A stretch of DNA of 64,000 nt from Lepidodermella squamata (GCA_047495785.1 JBLDXI010000074.1:1488001-1552000), one strand, 5' to 3'; counted from the first letter of the stretch, positions 1 to 9,596 are shown. The notes: generated from the sequence alone by a model not told the origin. Numbers and translations: made by a program.

Positions 1-3000
1 TAAGTTCCAGGACACCTTGGATGCGCTCATGACGGCGCCTCTCGAGTTCGCGGCTCAGAGTCTGAAAAAAGCAATTGAGGGAGCTGGAACAGATGAAGAG
101 GCAATCATTGAGGTGCTATGCTATGCTAATTACGACGACCTTCAACTAATCAAAGCCAAGTACGAAAAGCGTAAGTTGGAGTGGCCGTCGCACATTCATT
201 TGCATTATTTTTGTTCCTAGTTTACAAGGTTTCACTGCAGAAGGATATCGAGTCGGATACAAGTGGCCATTTTCGAAAACTTCTAGTTGCTCTACTCAAT
301 CGGCCTAAATCTCCAGAGAATGTTGACGTGAAAGGGGCGAAAACTGATTCGAAAACCCTACATGATGCATTTGCGAAGGGCAGTGATAAAGCTGCCGACG
401 AGTTGATCAAACTGCTGTCAGGCCGAGGGCGCTCGCAGCTACGGCTCATATTCGACACTTACAAAGCTGATTACAACACTGATGTTGTGGATGACATAAA
501 GAAAAACTTCGATAGCGACATCGAATCAGCGTTCGTCGCAACTGTCTATTCGATCCGCAACCGTTTCAAGTATTTCGCGAGCCGGTTGAATGCAGCGATG
601 GCAGGGCTTGGGACTCGAGACCAAGCTCTCATTCGGCTTATTGTCTCGCGCTGCGAAATCGATCTCGGAAATGTGAAGGAAGAGTACGAGAAAATGTACA
701 AAAAGTCTCTTGTAGCAGCCGTCTCAAGTGAAACTACGGGCGATTACTGCGACTGCTTGGTTTCGCTCATTAACGGTAACGGAAGCGGGAGCCCGCTGCC
801 AAAAGCTCCTGAACCGAAACCAGTTGAGAAGAAGGCAGAAAAGAAAGAGCCAGAGAAGAAGGAACCAGAGAAGAAAGAACCAGAGAAGCCCGAAAAAGGT
901 ATTAAAATATAAATGATGCGTATCCATATATAGTCGTATAATGAATCGCTGGGTAATTTTTGAACAGGAAAGAAAGGTAATATCAGCTTTTGCTTTCATC
1001 CAAATTTTTTAAATAGCCGGTTTATTTTATCAAGTAGAGTAGTCTGTAGCCCAATTAAATTCAAATAGCAATGCTCACGCAATTACGATACTATATATTA
1101 TATATTTCTTCAGCAATTGAGGCCTCCTGCGTCGCATCTGTACCGACTGTGGTTGCTGAGCCGAAGTTCGATGCGAAAAAAGATGCTGAGGTGTTGATGA
1201 AGGCCATGAAAGGCATTGGCACGGACGAGAAAAGCATCATCTCGGTTCTCACTCGCCGAACCTATCCGCAAAGAGCTGAGATCGAGAAGAAGTTCAAGGC
1301 GGAATACAAAAAGGTAACTTTAACATTTTTCACTCGCCATGATTACGATATTTAATGGCCTGGCAACATTTTACGAACTTAGAATTTCCTTGAAGTGAGT
1401 CTTGGTGTTGTGTATTTTGACCCCGATTCCTGATTCCCATTGCTCGTGTCATTGCTGTGAGAATCTATTTTAAAATGACGATTCGTTTCAGGAACTTCTT
1501 GCAGATCTAAAGAGTGAAACTGGAGGCGATTTCTTCAATCTTCTCACAGCCCTACTTACTCCACCTATCGAGTTCGCAGCGAAAAGTTTAAAGAAAGCGA
1601 TTCAAGGCGCTGGAACCGATGAGGAAACTCTAATCGAGGTGATCTGCTACGCATCATACGACGATCTTCAACTCATCAAGAGTAAATACGAGATGCGTGA
1701 GTTGAAGTTCTACTATATATTACCCCTTCATAATTCCCCCACTATTCGCAGTTTATCGAGTTCCGTTGCAACAAGATGCCGAAAGTGATACTAGTGGTCA
1801 TTTCCGGAAGTTGCTCGTAGCCTTGCTGAATCGGCCTAAATCGCCTGAGAATATTGATGTCAAAGCCGCGAGATCTGATGCGAAAAGCCTTCATGCCAGT
1901 ATAGCTAAAGGTGGCTCAGCAGCTGCCGATGACCTGACAACGGCTCTGTCGATAAAAGGCCGATCTCAGCTGAGGTTGATCTTCGAGAATTACAAGGCTG
2001 AATTCAAAACTGACATAGTCGATGATATTCGAGAGCATTTCGATAGCGATGTTGAAACAGCCTTTGTTGCCACTGTCGAATCGATCCGCAATAGATTCAG
2101 GTACTTCGCTACCCGGCTTGACGCGGCCATGAGTGGTGTCGGAACAAGAGATGATGCGTTGATCCGACTCATTGTCTCACGCTGTGAAATCGACCTTGGC
2201 AATATCAAGGAGGAGTTTGAAAAAATGTACAAAAAGCCATTGGTGAAAGCGGTTGGTGATGAAACGTCTGGCGATTATCGCGACGGTCTCATATCGCTGA
2301 TAATGGGCAACAATGGCAACAAGAAAGACGATCCGAAACCTCCTGAGCCGAATAAAGACAAGCCGCCACCTGAACCCAAAAAGGAGGCAAAGAAAGTAGA
2401 GCCAAAAGGTATTTTTATTTACAAACTTGCAAAGAAGTCGGACAAATATGTACTACAGCTAAAGGGAAAACAGGAGTCGACAAAGTGAAAAAAGGTTCCC
2501 AAATATTATGTAACATGTCCCTATTTTAATGTAGACCATTTCATTTCAGCTTAATAGTAGACGTAGCCAAGTATGAAATTCAATATTGTGTATAGAACCC
2601 GAAATCCTTTTCGTTTGTAGCAAAACCCTGTGGCTTAATGGAAATTAATACTCATTGCTGTTGATGTTATTCTTGTAGAAAATATAGCGTCAACGCCAAC
2701 CGTTATTCCTGAAGTCAAATTTGACGCTAAGAAGGATGCCGAGGCTCTGATGAAGGCTATGAAGGGCATTGGAACGGACGAAGATAGCCTGATAGCTGTT
2801 TTGACGCGGCGATGTTACCTCCAGCGGGCTGAGATCGAAAAAGCTTATAAGTCCGAGTACAAAAAAGTAACTATTGAACCACCATGATTGTAATGGCTAC
2901 TTGTTATCTGTTAATATATTAAAGGACTTGGAGTCAGAAATCGAAAGTGAGACTGACGGCGAATTTTTCAAAACGTTGTCAGCGCTGCTAACGTCCCCGG

Positions 3001-6000
3001 TTGAGTACCTAGCTAAATGTGCTCGAAAAGCTATTGAAGGATCGGGAACTGACGAGGAAACCTTGATCGAGGTGATTTGCGCACCCAGTTACGAGGACAT
3101 GCAGCTTCTCAAGGCCAAATACCAGCAACGTATGCTCGTATGACGTCCATGTTACTTTGTTAAAATCTCATTTTGCAGTCTACGATACTCCTCTGCAAAA
3201 AGACATTGAGGGGGATACAAGTGGAGCATTTAGAAAGCTGCTTGTTGCCCTGATCAATCGACCTAAGTCGCCTGAGAACATCGACGTGAAAGCAGCGAAA
3301 ACAGATGCGAAATCGCTGCACGACGCTATGGTGAAGGGTGGCGAAACGGCCTCAGATGAGCTGACTAAATTGCTGTCAAGCCGCGGCCGAGCTCAACTGC
3401 GACTCATTTTTGACACTTACGATGCAGACAATGACGTCGATCTCGAACCTGACATTAAGAAGCACTTCGACAGCGAGTTGGAAGCAGCCTTCGTTGCGAC
3501 AGTCCAAAGCATCCGTAATCGATTCAAATACTATGCCGGCCGCCTTGATTTCGCCATGGGAGGAAGTGGCACGAAGGACGAGATGCTCATTCGAATCATT
3601 GTCTCGCGTTGTGAACTCGATCTCGAAAATGTGAAAGATGAGTTTGAAAAGTCTTACAGCAAAACTCTGGCGAAAACAGTCGAGGATGAAACCTCTGGCG
3701 ATTACTGCAAATGTTTACTTTCCCTTATTAAGGGCAACAATGCCAACAAAATTTCGGTGGAAGAAGCCAGGAAACTTTTCAAACCTACTAAGCAGGAGGA
3801 ACACAAGGAGCCGAAGAAAGAAGAGGCTAAGAAAGAACCGGAAATTCCTCCACCGAAGCCAGATTCCAAAATGGCGCCAACGGTCCTCCCTGATCCTCAA
3901 TTTGACGTAAAGAAAGACTGCGAGGCGCTGATGAAGGCGATGAAAGGCCTGGGCACTGATGAGGACTCGCTAACTGCTGTTTTGACGAAGCGATCGTGGA
4001 AACAGAGGTCTGAAATCGAAGTCAAATACAAAGAAATCTACAAAAAGGTAAAAACCCGCTTGTCTCCCAAAATTCCCAACGTATTTGAGACATCTTGCTT
4101 TTATCAAGGAAATTAGTCAGGTAACATGAACATCAAGGCTGTTTTTTGATCCTCTAATCTAATGCTGATCTAATGCTAAATCTTTCAAATTCCACTTTAA
4201 GATTGATCTGTTCTAAACAATTTTATTTTATTAGGAGCTGGAGGCCGAGTTGAAAAGTGAAACCGAAGGCAACTATTTGATGGTGCTAACAGATCTCCTT
4301 AAGACACCCTATGAAGTTTCGGCCACCGCTTTGAATAAAGCGCTGAAAGGCAGCACGAATGAAGAGCTTCTAGTTGAAATAGTATGCAGCCAATCTTATG
4401 ACGATCTCCAGATGACACTTGGCAAATACGAAAATTGTTTGCTTACTTATTGTGCCATATGCTTTGATTCTTAACAAGTTGCTTTTCACAGTGTTTAAAA
4501 AGGCATTCATTAAGGATGTTGAAAGCGAGACAAATGGACAATTTCAGAAGTTAATGGCTGCGTTGATCAAGCGGCCGAAATCAGGTAAGGCTCCGGATCC
4601 GAAAGCTGCCAAAACGGACGCGAAAGCTCTGCATGACGAAATGCCGAAAAGCGTCGACAAGGGCTTGGATTCCTTTGTCAAGTTGCTCTCCACAAAAGGC
4701 CATACACAATTGAGGGCGGCATTCGAGGCCTACAAGGCCGATTACAAAACAGAAATCGAAGCAGACGTTCAGAAGCACTTCGGCAAGAGTCCCGATCTCC
4801 AAAAATCTCTCCTGGCAGTTGGTAAGTTCCGATCTTGCTCAAAATCCGATAAACATGTATATGTTCTCAGTCGGGATCATACGAAATAAGCCGGTGTACT
4901 TTGCGAAGAGATTTCAAGCTGCCATGGAAGGCGCTGGTACAAAAGATGAGGATTTGTCGCGCCTCTGTGTCACGCGTTGTGAAGTCGATCTAGGCACAAT
5001 CAAAGCCGAATACGAACGAATGTATAGCAAGCCACTTGTAAAAGCAGTTGAATCGGAGACTTCCGGCGATTACCAGAAAGCCCTTGTATCTCTTATCAAC
5101 GGAAACGCTCTGAGCAAAGAGAAGACTGTTACCAAAGGTTAGTCTTCACAACTATTTGCAGCATTTCCTCTATGAATCATTGCATTCTTTGGTTATAACA
5201 ATATTACAGCGGAAAATTATGTGGAGGAAGCTGAAAAAGTTAAACAAAACATTACCTCAGATGAGTGGCCTAGTTGGGAAAAAGAGGCAAATAAGCCTCA
5301 TGTCACTGGGGAAGAAGGGAATGATAAAGATGCCAGTGGTAAAGATACACAGAAAGAGGGGCAAGGTGGAGACGTAGAGATTGAAGGAGACGTGGTTGCA
5401 CCGACGGTTACTACCGAAGAAGAAAGCGATGAAGGGAAAGGTCAGAAGGATGGTGATAAAGATGATAACAAGAATGAAGTGGCCGAGGACGAGGGTGGCA
5501 CAGATGTAGGTAAGGAAGCTGAAAATAATGAAGAGTCAAAAGATGATGACAAGAAGGAAGAAGCCAAGGACGAACAGAAAGATGGCACTGATGATGGTAA
5601 GGAGACTGAAAACAAGGAAGAGTCGAAAGATGGTGATACCGAAGGAGCCAACCCTGAACGTGTGTCCGATGAAAAGCAAAAAGACGAAGAGGAAGGAGAA
5701 GGAGAAGGTAAAAAGGATGGTGATAAAGAGGGTGATAACGATGAGGACAAGAAAGATGAACAGCGGGAGGGTGAAGAAGATGTCCCAGCAGTGAAAAACG
5801 AGAACGAGGGCGATGCTGATAACGAAGATAAGCACGAAGAACCTGATGGCAATGAGAAAGACAAGGACAAAGATTCCAAGAAAGATGACAAAACTACAAC
5901 GAAAGACAGCGATAAAAAAGAGGACAAAGAGGGCAATAAACACAAAGATGGGGAAAAGGAGAAAGAGAAGGAGAAAGAGAAAGGGAAAGGGAAAGAAAAG

Positions 6001-6466
6001 GAAAAAGAAAAAGAAAAAGAAAAAGAAAGGGAAAAGGAAAAAGACCAGGGCAAAGATAAAGACAAGAAAGAGGATCATGGCAAGAATAAGGACAAAGAGA
6101 AAGAAAAGACGGCCGACAAGGACAAGGGCAAGAACGACAGCGCGAAAGCAGGTTCGATTTTCATTCAATCTCGAAAATACTTCCTTTACTTCTCGGCGTC
6201 TCAACTATTCAACATGCAAACTCAATAAACGCTTTTGGCGAAATTCTGCAGTGTTTCAACTCGCTTCGTTTTCAATTGGTTTTTTAATTCTAAAAATGTT
6301 TCGCCCTTCCAAAACTTGAATATAGTTTACTATGGTTTTGCCGTTACAATATGTCGTTTTGTTATTTCGCAGGTCCAGCAAAGCCAGAGGACAAGAAGAA
6401 AGGTATTTTAGCCGGATGAAATATTTGTTTTGTCGCACAATTTTTCATTTGATTTCAGGAAAATGA
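1..6466 (+). CDS. Multi-core annexin (at least 4 tandem four-repeat cores, 5' end outside the window) with a C-terminal acidic/KE-rich disordered tail
   Basis: Annexin motifs recur four times (MKGIGTDE, GAGTDEE, SDTSGHFRKLLVALL, GxGTRD..LIRLIVSRCEIDL, ETSGDY). Phase-compatible GT-AG exons: <1-170, 221-898, 1114-1313, 1492-1696, 1752-2408, 2679-2866, 2925-3129, 3179-4047, 4235-4436, 4492-4821, 4871-5137, 5210-6151, 6373-6402, 6459-6466 (TGA). Exon 3179-4047 joins core 3 to core 4 with no intron. AATAAA at ~6562. Confidence 0.9.
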
Positions 6467-7137
6467 GTCCGCGTGAGGTATGATTTTCCCAGTTTTCTCC
6501 CTCTTTGCTTGCCAAACACACCGTTGCTTTTCTATTTTCCAGACATGATCCGTCAAAAAGCAATAAATTTCAAAAAAACATCACAAACATAATCTTACAT
6601 TTTATAACGTGTTGTGAATCGAAAAATTGAATTTTCACTTTTCAAATGCTAGCTTCTTCGCATAAACTGTGCAGCTTTTGTACGCGTATTTCCGCACTTT
6701 TCTTCTTGTGCTGTAATAAGTTTGAACTTGTTTGTTGTGAAAGAGAATGGAACTTTCCAGCTCGCGTGTTTCAATAAAAGCGATCTTGCCATTTCATTTC
6801 TTCACCACTCACCACTCACACAATAACAGTGCGACGGGATGAATAATACGAGAGCCGCCGGTTAAGCGTACCATTTATTTTGCCACAAACATTGACGGCG
6901 AAAATAACCAGCGACCTAAAATTACACCCGAGTGCGTGTGTGCACGCTGTTGTTTTCACGGAGGTCAGCAGCGGCGAGCGGCGAGCGGCGAGATAATGCG
7001 GCTCACGCTCTCACCTCAATGGCAGGCTGAATCATCCACGCACAACTTGTTAATACTAAACTTTTCTAGATTGTTCCCCAGCGACCCAGTCCTCGTCGTT
7101 TTAAGGCGAGGTTGAACCATTTTTGAGTTGTATAGAA

Positions 7138-8569
7138 ATGCGCGCTTATTACATCATTTTGTTCGCGGCGTTTTTCGCCATTAAAGCACACGCCTTCGCC
7201 TTTTTCGGCAGCGCAAGCGGCGAGCCGGAAATCGAGGAAAAAGACGGTGTCTTGTGGTTGACCGAGAAAACATTCGACCTCGCACTTAAAAATTACAAGG
7301 CTCTCCTTGTTAGCTTTTACCCTTCATCCGTTATTTGTACCACTTGCCAACATGTCCACGACGAATTCGCAGCGGCGGCGAAAATTTTCACTGAGGAAGG
7401 TGAGCATGACACCAAGCTGGCTATTGTCGACGTTGCGAAGAACCCCGAGTTGAAGGAGCGCTTCCATGTCAAAAAGTACCCGGCAGTTCGGTTCTTCAAA
7501 AAAGGCGAGGAGTTCGAGGACTTGATGGGCCACGGTCACTACGTCGGCTCGTGGCACTCGCACACGATTGTTGCATGGCTGCGCAAAAAGAACGGCGAAA
7601 GTGCGTATCGCAGGCTGCATTCCACGGCTGAAATTCAGGAATTCGCCGAGGATAACGAAGCCGCCGTGGTCGGCATTTTCAAGGACCCGAACGGCAAGGA
7701 AGCCAAGGCGTTCGTTGAAGCGTCGCATCAAGTCCTCGACGACGGCGTCAATTTCGGCCTGGTGATCCCTGATGAGGATATGATGCAGACTGAGTTCGGC
7801 GACTCTGATAAAGTCGCCAAAATTTACATAATCAAGAAATTTGACGAGCTGATGAATGTCTACCACGACCAGCCGTACGACAGTGTCAAGGAAATTGTCA
7901 ATTTCGTCCGGTTACGGGCATTCCCTTACGTCGTCGATTTCTCAACTGGCGCCGAGGATGTGCAGCGATCGTTTGGAAGCCAACACATCCACAACCATCT
8001 GGTGCTGTTCGCCTCTAAATCCCATCCTGATATCCAGGTGAGCCACATGCTTTCTTTTTTATCCAGGTGAACCCGTTTGTGGGGCTGTGGGGCTATACAA
8101 AAAAATACTCAGTTTTTTTATAGCGATGCAACAAAATTCTGCACTTCTCAACCCCACGTTTAGCCTAAGGAATTGTTTGGTGGCTAGAACGTCGATTTAT
8201 CTTTATTTCCATACTCTTATTTCCTACGTTTTGTTTGTTATCTAGAGTCTGCACAGCGAGTTCCGAAAATCGGCGAAAGCTCTGCGCGCCGAATTCGGCG
8301 ATAGCATGAGCTGGACCTTTGTTGACGCCAGCAACCCGGAGCACCTCGAGTGGATGCAGTACTTTAGCGTTAAAAGCGAACAGGACACCCCACTGGTCAT
8401 GATCGTTGTTCTCGACGGTCGGAAACTCATCTATAAACTGAAACGCAAAACCCTGGAAAATGGACAGCTAAGCCCGATTGATGCAAAGGCCCTCGAGACC
8501 CATGTGCGCGATTTTTTCGCCGACAAACTTGACGTAGATGAGACAAATTATGTGAAAAATGAGCTTTAA
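7138..8569 (+). CDS. Protein disulfide isomerase family protein (thioredoxin-fold a-b-b', CTTC motif, ER-retrieval KNEL)
   Basis: Signal peptide MRAYYIILFAAFFAIKAHA. PDI a-domain motifs (EEKDGVLWLTEKTFD, LLVSFY..CTTC, LAIVD, RFHVKKYPAVRFFKKG), then b/b' motifs (AVVGIFKD, IIKKFDE, PYVVDFS). Exons 7138-8037 and 8246-8569 (phase 0). Ends KNEL*. Confidence 0.85.
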
Positions 8570-9596
8570 ACATTGCAATTTTTACATCACTTGAATAAAA
8601 AGAAAATCTCTTGCCCTCGACTTTGTTCGCAGTTTATTATCAAAATTAACAATTCGTTTGGCGCATAGTTCGTAAATTGCGTTCGTGTGCTGTTTTGCTG
8701 ATTGAGATTGGCTGATTGATGAATTTGGTGAGTTTGGTGACGAAGTGGTGTTGTGACACACGTGCTTCGCAAGCCATAACCAAGCCATCATCCATCTGCC
8801 TCTCACTCTCAATGCTTAGGGGTAGAAAAAAGGTAAATGCGTATTTCATTCTGATGATACCACAATCAATCCACAGGGATCTTGAAAATATTGATTAAAA
8901 CCACAGAAATGTTGAAACGAAAAAAAGCAAGCTATATAGCCAGCCGCGATAGCTTTTGCATAACCATCATCGCAGTTCTAAAAATGAACAGGTACGAAAT
9001 CAACAAAATAGGTCTGAAATATTTCAATCTGGCAATGCGGGTCGTTTCGTCATGCATGGCGAGCTCTATTCAAGCATTTCAGCGCCTGTTGGATATGCCT
9101 AACTATTAGGTTCACAGTCTATCTACTAGTCAAAGCAATGCGGATGAGGTTCGGCGAACAACTTATTCTGTTGTTGCGGCGTGTTGGCCAAAGTCTCAGT
9201 TACATAGGCTACCACGGCAGAGTACCATGGCTGATATCTTCTGACAACTGCATGTGTTTTCAACACATCGATGATGATGATGATGATGATTATATGAAAA
9301 GAAGACAGAAAAACAGAAACATGTAATTTGAACGTGCGGATAAGAAAATTCAATTGGATGCAATGCGAAAAAATCATGAGTTGAAGTAGTAGAGAAGTAT
9401 TTAGTATGCATGTCAGTAAAAAACTGAATCGCCACGAGGCCGATCGTTTTGTTATTCATCACAGTGTCAACGCAACCTTGCTAGTTATTATGTTTAGTTA
9501 AAGACTGAGGCGCTGGTTTTTTCTTTAAAAAACACATAGTTAAACACAAAATTAGTTAGGATTAAATGACTTTTCGCAAGCAGATTACAAAAGTTG

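Follow-up and report, generated by a model that had tools for sequence, protein, structure and literature searches.

The window analysed here, a stretch of 64,000 nucleotides from Lepidodermella squamata (C74:1488001-1552000, + strand), opens inside a gene for a giant annexin. The reading that we favour, with a probability of roughly 0.68, is that a single gene encodes a head with a DCX domain, two PLAT domains and a trefoil-like region, followed by eight annexin cores (A to H) and a tail of 339 residues, and that its product is a Ca2+-switched tether between microtubules and membranes. The initial annotation of the window had proposed an annexin with at least four cores in one spliced frame over positions 1-5137. 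This frame was borne out by Pfam matches throughout, by exons bounded by GT-AG introns and by the open reading frame, and the further cores that were expected upstream were found when the sequence was extended (cores A-D, preceded by a non-annexin head). The count of four cores was too low, as the gene has eight, together with the DCX-PLAT-PLAT-trefoil-like head and a probable tail.

Annexin Array

The Pfam Annexin family (PF00191; gathering cut-off of 25 bits) matched exon pieces throughout the array, with a top score of 163 bits, while the core H piece at 4256-4420 scored 23.3 bits and lay just below the cut-off. When the whole genome was scanned with Pfam in six frames, 88 annexin matches were obtained, 31 of which form an unbroken + strand run at C74:1482577-1493094. 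Six-frame translation yielded annexin sequence across 1-5137 of the window on the + strand, corresponding to 15.5 repeats: the end of core E and then cores F, G and H. Four further cores (A-D) precede the window and have the same orientation. A hidden Markov model (HMM) made from the gene's own repeats counted 32 repeats in the model, four per core, and the eight cores, each of 309-313 residues, align end to end. By its PF00191 repeats, its four-repeat cores of about 310 residues and its type II sites, the predicted product is a member of the annexin superfamily.

The junctions A-B, B-C, C-D and G-H are all internal to exons. Core G passes into core H within exon 3179-4047, which is the transition from a third to a fourth core that had been described initially. 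Since A-B, B-C and C-D are exon-internal, at least four cores belong to one protein regardless of how the inter-core introns are treated. At each of the remaining boundaries (D-E, E-F, F-G and H-tail) there is an intron of phase 1, the donor of which stands immediately ahead of a stop, and the intervals D-E, E-F and F-G measure only 215-289 bases. The three inter-core introns have in common their donor type, phase and acceptor placement. The stops reported near 912 and 2488 do exist (910-912 and 2486-2488); each is situated just inside an intron, past the phase-1 donor AAG/GT at the linker end (899 and 2409), and these donors are paired with acceptors at 1113 and 2678, respectively. Given that the introns at module boundaries are all of phase 1, the modules are symmetrical and whole cores could be skipped in frame. 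Inside the cores two intron positions recur from core to core, as had been noted, one after Y-K-K in phase 0 and the other after K-Y-x-x, one base into the next codon.

The linkers between cores range from 16 to 51 residues, with 31-71% of P+E+V+K. In linkers E-F, F-G and G-H (38-49 residues) this proportion is 61-71%, and in C-D, E-F and F-G it is 66-71%, the E-F linker having 49 residues and 71%. This same linker contains the sole internal repeat found in the linkers, a 15-base unit present 3.5 times at 836-888 that encodes PEKKE. The PEVK segment of titin is a tract of hundreds of residues with repeats of about 28 residues (PPAK) and poly-E, and with at least 70% of P/E/V/K. Earlier, the linkers had been described as PEVK-like and the molecule as elastic; the composition of E-F, F-G and G-H agrees with the first term, but lengths of 16-51 residues without the 28-residue repeats of titin lend no specific support to elasticity. 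On these grounds, and with P+E+V+K contents as low as 31%, a titin-type PEVK spring was rejected.

The canonical type II Ca2+ motif (GxGT-38-[DE]) was identified in 14 of the 32 repeats, all of them in cores D-H: in repeats 1, 2 and 4 of D, E, F and G, and in repeats 1 and 4 of H. Thirteen are strict matches and the fourteenth corresponds to repeat 1 of core H, in which the cap Glu is recovered by acceptor 4234, which was adopted. Among the 32 repeats checked, the motif was found neither in cores A-C nor in any repeat 3. Although the molecule had initially been described as Ca2+-dependent, such sites are retained in five of its eight cores (D-H).

Gene Model and Exon Organization

The GT-AG pairs that keep the frame open were enumerated, and selection among them was made through homology between cores. 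All searches were run per single exon, and exons were joined only for translation, counting, alignment, the estimates of nonsynonymous (dN) and synonymous (dS) divergence and the tree. Whole-genome scans covered the 121-Mb assembly of 151 contigs. L006 designates the 10 kb directly upstream of the window, in which a position minus 10000 is the window coordinate.

The resulting gene spans C74:1479050-1494228 (window −8950 to 6228) on the + strand. The model starts at the ATG at L006:1050, 8,950 bases ahead of the window, and consists of 29 exons and 28 GT-AG introns of 38-289 bases; typical introns are of about 50 bases and the genome is small. Its coding sequence of 12,303 bases has no internal stops or frameshifts and specifies 4,100 residues (about 459 kDa), or 3,762 residues if the tail is excluded. 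The order of domains is DCX, PLAT, PLAT, beta-trefoil-like region, annexin cores A-H and a D/E/K-rich tail. The gene upstream has a stop and an AATAAA of its own, and ends about 340 bases short of the giant-annexin ATG.

All the exons in the window are on the + strand. The first (1-170) starts 34 bases upstream of the window and carries the second half of repeat 1 and the first half of repeat 2 of core E (Pfam Annexin, 2.6e-12 over 2-172). It is followed by exon 221-898, with repeats 2b-4 of core E and the P/E/K linker (9.3e-40 over 226-909, in three stretches). The phase-1 intron from E to F (899-1113) has the donor AAG/GTATTA and the acceptor atatttcttcag, with a pyrimidine tract. Core F is encoded by exons 1114-1313 (repeat 1a; 2.7e-11), 1492-1696 (repeats 1b-2a; 5.8e-16, with splice sites) and 1752-2408 (repeats 2b-4 and linker; 6.7e-35 over 1766-2410), after which the phase-1 intron from F to G (2409-2678) presents the donor AAG/GTATTT and an acceptor at 2678 with a pyrimidine tract. 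Core G begins with exons 2679-2866 (repeat 1a; 1.4e-13) and 2925-3129 (repeats 1b-2a; 5.1e-14). The single exon 3179-4047 then contains, in an open frame, repeats 2b-4 of core G, a 46-residue linker and repeat 1a of core H (1.3e-48 over 3190-4053, in four stretches). The rest of core H occupies exons 4235-4436 (repeats 1b-2a; tandem acceptor TAG/GAG, with 4234 as the alternative), 4492-4821 (repeats 2b-3; 4.9e-11) and 4871-5137 (repeat 4; six-frame Pfam match of 76 bits at C74:1492897-1493094).

Beyond core H, a probable phase-1 intron of 72 bases (5138-5209; donor AAG/GTTAGT, acceptor acaatattacag) removes the stop at 5140-5142, and its phase is identical to that of the three inter-core introns. 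It leads to a probable last exon at 5210-6228 that would encode the D/E/K-rich tail, as judged from codon periodicity and the position of the AATAAA. Over its 339 residues the tail is composed of 20% K, 20% E and 15% D, and no Pfam family was matched to it. The periodicity is strong (position 1 is G/A, position 2 is A in 67% and position 3 is mixed). The tail stop at 6226-6228 overlaps the AATAAA at 6224, and neither AATAAA nor ATTAAA occurs between 5142 and 5935.

Head Region

The DCX domain (PF03607) scored 57.6 bits against a cut-off of 22 bits, at residues 78-133 of exon 1, and solved doublecortin N-DC domains matched the same region with an E value of about 1e-4. The two PLAT domains (PF01477) scored 46.4 and 43.6 bits against a cut-off of 23 bits, and the second of them (PLAT2) also matched polycystin-1 (E value of 1e-5) and lipoxygenase PLAT domains. 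The assignment of the region between PLAT2 and core A as beta-trefoil-like is only a lead. No signal peptide was evident by eye in the giant annexin. A DCX domain above the Pfam cut-off is shared with the DCX, DCLK, RP1 and DCDC family. However, the usual proteins of this family have a tandem DCX pair, whereas the giant annexin has a single DCX domain and lacks a kinase or any other known DCX-family tail.

Origin and Age of the Array

The identities between cores range from 28 to 75% overall. Cores E, F and G share 67-75% with one another, and D and H have about 54% identity to the rest. The best identities of cores C, B and A are about 52, 43 and 33%, respectively. In a quick maximum-likelihood tree, which comprised the eight cores, the core of the neighbouring paralogue described below and 28 outside cores, none of them from vertebrates, the eight cores and the paralogue's core formed one clade apart from the 28 outside cores, with a value of 99 in the Shimodaira-Hasegawa-like approximate likelihood ratio test (SH-aLRT). 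The clade of E, F and G was nested inside it, also with an SH-aLRT of 99. Since all eight cores belong to a single clade separate from outside annexins, the array is attributed to internal duplication, in agreement with the initial annotation. An annexin A6 orthologue was rejected on this internal-duplication signal, with the tree holding no vertebrate sequences.

Nucleotide divergence between cores is at least 31%. Saturation of synonymous sites was seen in almost every pair of cores, E and F included, so that dN alone is informative; for E and F it is 0.18. Tandem Repeats Finder detected no large repeats in the array. With dS saturated and dN low, the cores are neither an assembly artefact nor decaying duplicates but ancient copies under purifying selection. 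The remark made at first that the divergence of the cores speaks against an artefact holds in view of the saturated dS and of identities of 28-75%.

One Gene or Several

Splicing across D-E, E-F and F-G is predicted from sequence signals, and several observations weigh against a single gene with the organization and role proposed here. No near-identical transcript-derived protein was found in the whole-library HMMER search with the G-H exon or in the word search with the E exon. In the head, the trefoil-like region scored 19.5 bits with the Pfam FGF family, below the cut-off of 24 bits, and its match to FGF4 was weak (E value of 0.045). Its language-model look-alikes, from fascin, FRG1 and ricin clusters, are leads only, and its single-sequence AlphaFold2 model was all-beta but poor, with a predicted local distance difference test (pLDDT) value of 33.8. 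The tail, which we consider a probable coding exon, could instead be a 3′ untranslated region, and microtubule binding, membrane binding and the response to Ca2+ are predicted functions. Finally, the E-F intron contains ATTAAA at 901 and 1054, an AG at 1068 and an ATG at 1071. These signals would allow two cistrons in an operon-like arrangement, one with the head and cores A-E ending at 910-912 and polyadenylated past the ATTAAA at 901, and another with cores F-G-H and the tail, translated from the ATG at 1071 behind a spliced-leader acceptor at 1068. They are about 150-190 bases apart, a distance that would be appropriate between two cistrons. Nevertheless, the E-F intron shares its phase-1 donor and acceptor placement with D-E and F-G, two introns in which neither AATAAA nor ATTAAA was found and an ATG is likewise absent, and the peptide from the ATG at 1071 to the acceptor is a translated pyrimidine tract. 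Moreover, the products would remain multi-core annexins, with five and three cores. Two cistrons are therefore regarded as unlikely.

Much less probable is a tandem array of separate single-core genes with their own starts, in which the apparent read-through would be coincidental. A stop does follow each of the E and F linkers, and tandem annexin arrays exist elsewhere in the genome (e.g., C1:4221671-4265291). However, the sequence already contradicts this explanation at A-B, B-C, C-D and G-H, which lie within open exons, the gaps between cores measure only 215-289 bases and all boundaries are phase-compatible. Nor were independent starts found, since cores A, E and G lack an in-frame ATG upstream of their first helix and of the conserved start (IAS-PTV in E and G). 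It is scarcely credible that the array was created by faulty assembly or consists of decaying duplicates. The published L. squamata assembly was made from multiple-displacement-amplified DNA, and this amplification can give chimeric reads (PMC11660948, where 28,377 gene models and a transcriptome of the adult are also described). Against this, the cores differ by 25-72% in protein and by at least 31% in nucleotides, with synonymous sites saturated and dN low, and the 12.3-kb coding sequence runs without stops or frameshifts in a region where Tandem Repeats Finder reported no large repeats. A single gene for the giant annexin is consequently the reading retained in what follows.

Relatives Within and Outside the Genome

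Two paralogues of the giant annexin were located in the genome. One of them, directly upstream (C74:1471381-1478680), has a homologous DCX-PLAT-trefoil-like head and one core. The other (C13:1495634-1503243) has a homologous head and three cores, with one core junction internal to an exon; its head is 48-64% identical in the PLAT2-trefoil part (from the tblastn pieces past residue 422) and about 31% over the DCX piece. The cores of both are 24-53% identical to those of the giant annexin, and number one and three as opposed to eight. Other annexin sites are an eight-repeat run at C17:1024789-1028153 and a 44-kb array at C1:4221671-4265291, and further annexin repeats occur at C13:1499692-1503243 and on C20, C19 and C34. 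The expansion and fusion of annexins seem to run through the genome as a whole.

Outside the genome, the best identity was 47% (HMMER, G-H exon), or 42% at full coverage (word search, E exon), and multi-core proteins led the score ranking of the G-H exon search. The predictions include a protein of 1,969 residues in Nematostella (XP_048586536.1), with a CFAP97 head and 19-20 repeats; one of 1,288 residues in Priapulus (XP_014664979.1), with an Fn3_assoc-type head and 11 repeats; one of 1,447 residues in Haliotis (XP_046366105.2), with a CFAP97 head and 8 (Pfam) to 11 (own HMM) repeats; and one of 1,096 residues in Bradybaena (BFZ22448.1), with an Fn3_assoc-type head and 8 repeats. The protein of Intoshia (OAF66649.1; 1,126 residues) has no head but poly(A)-polymerase-type domains after 6 (Pfam) to 8 (own HMM) repeats. 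A transcript of the choanoflagellate Salpingoeca urceolata (1,268 residues) combines a weak zf-UBR match with 8 repeats, and in dinoflagellates a Yihiella transcript and an Effrenium gene model (1,028-1,438 residues) have 9-10 repeats, the Yihiella transcript having nine. In other phyla, annexin tails of 4-20 repeats were observed behind a CFAP97 head (four proteins) or an Fn3_assoc head (five proteins); the first of these, CFAP97/Hemingway, takes its name from a protein associated with cilia.

In the textbook view annexins have a single core, and annexin A6, with two, is the sole exception. The initial annotation had relied on this view of annexin A6 as the exception, which is outdated in light of the predictions with 3-5 cores in Priapulus and Nematostella and of the 9-repeat dinoflagellate transcript: annexins with more than two cores, as predicted in these organisms, are not unprecedented. 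The proteins of Nematostella, Priapulus and Haliotis resemble the giant annexin in having more than two cores behind a non-annexin head; they differ from it in their number of repeats, at most 19-20 versus 32, and in heads of CFAP97/Hemingway or Fn3_assoc type rather than DCX-PLAT. More than 12 matched stretches were not found in any of the best 150 matches. DCX or PLAT domains were absent from the 15 long proteins scanned among these 150, in searches where the length window of the word search hides full-length relatives from single exons. As far as found, the 32 repeats are the most in any protein and, together with the DCX-PLAT head, have no equal in the searches made. In the library that was searched, no paper on poly-annexins, or on repeated heads before annexin tails, was found. 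A survey by Fernandez, Garcia, Martin-Almedina and Morgan (Biol Chem 2017) reportedly describes 'atypical annexins' that carry several ANX domains, as many as 20, along with various additional domains; we know of no 32-repeat protein or DCX-PLAT head from it. Cores of the same multi-core protein tended to group by species in the tree, and because of this clustering the multi-core arrays are considered to have arisen independently.

Annexin A6 also has whole cores joined head to tail by a flexible linker, and its structures 1AVC and 1M9I were the best solved match to exon 3179-4047, with two matched stretches. It consists, however, of two cores and no other domains, in contrast to the eight cores, head and charged tail of the giant annexin, three cores of which are without Ca2+ sites. 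The two cores of annexin A6 descend from a vertebrate fusion of A5-like and A10-like annexins.

Candidate Microexons

A segment of the form AG-N12-GTRA was aligned in all four long introns of repeat 1 (cores D, E, F and H; 178-224 bases), 54-68 bases past the donor. The four 12-base candidates, all in frame and stop-free with AG/GTRA flanks, lie on the + strand at 1383-1394 in core F, at 4109-4120 in core H, and at L006:8111-8122 and L006:9796-9807 in cores D and E. The segments of cores D, E, F and H encode ELKQ, DLVY, NFLE and EISQ. The corresponding intron of core G, of 58 bases, is devoid of the segment, and in cores A-C this position is not interrupted by an intron. The canonical repeat length is already obtained when the candidates are skipped. 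The segment may be a conserved alternative microexon that adds one helical turn.

Purine-rich candidates are also present in the inter-core introns, with 9 bases at 968-976, 21 bases at 2474-2494 and 6 bases at L006:9324-9329. They are preceded by AACAG, followed by GT and situated 65-71 bases past the donor, and their lengths are all multiples of three. As microexons, which is unproven, they would add G/K-rich residues to the linkers; these introns align poorly.

Downstream Neighbourhood

Between the AATAAA of the annexin gene and the ATG of the next gene there is a 30-base piece (6373-6402) flanked by tttcgcag/ and /gtatttta. It encodes (G)PAKPEDKKK, similar to the annexin linkers and to the AAG/GTATTT donors. 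The piece may be what is left of a linker that was lost, or else an exon outside the translated part. The next gene on the + strand (6459-8570) apparently starts with the ATG at 6463, four bases past the acceptor gatttcag/GAAA ATG. It includes a 315-codon frame at 7123-8070 which by eye is thioredoxin-fold or PDI-like, with a hydrophobic leader.

Proposed Function and Significance

With no signal peptide evident by eye, the giant annexin would be cytosolic. Its DCX head would sit on microtubules. On a rise in Ca2+, membranes of acidic phospholipids would be bound by the five cores nearest the C terminus and perhaps also by the PLAT domains, and the flexible linkers together with the three Ca2+-blind cores would serve as a spacer. 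The outcome would be a high-avidity, Ca2+-switched tether from microtubule to membrane. Its cores might be arranged next to each other on a single membrane, or they might link two membranes, which annexin A6 is able to do. In-frame skipping of cores through the phase-1 introns could give rise to isoforms of differing valency. The initial annotation had suggested a membrane cross-linker or repair scaffold; nothing found speaks specifically for a role in repair, and from the microtubule-type head we infer a cytoskeleton-to-membrane tether instead.

More tentatively, and on balance doubtful, the 32-repeat polypeptide of about 459 kDa might be the largest annexin known and might work as a zipper, graded by Ca2+, that joins microtubules to membranes, perhaps on the ciliated ventral side of the animal, with splicing setting the number of membrane units. 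It would then form part of an undescribed class of poly-annexins placed behind cilium or microtubule heads, which elsewhere are of the CFAP97 and Fn3_assoc types.

The finding concerns an annexin core that was multiplied eightfold in a single predicted frame and joined to a microtubule-type head, with a gradient of Ca2+ sites along the array, from none in the first three cores to fourteen in the last five. Multi-core annexins would have arisen independently in several phyla, behind non-annexin heads of which several bear cilium or microtubule names. In this regard, the array of L. squamata may serve as a test case for the relation of valency to Ca2+ sensitivity and membrane avidity, for the role of Ca2+-blind annexin cores and for annexin arrays as tethers between cytoskeleton and membrane in animals.

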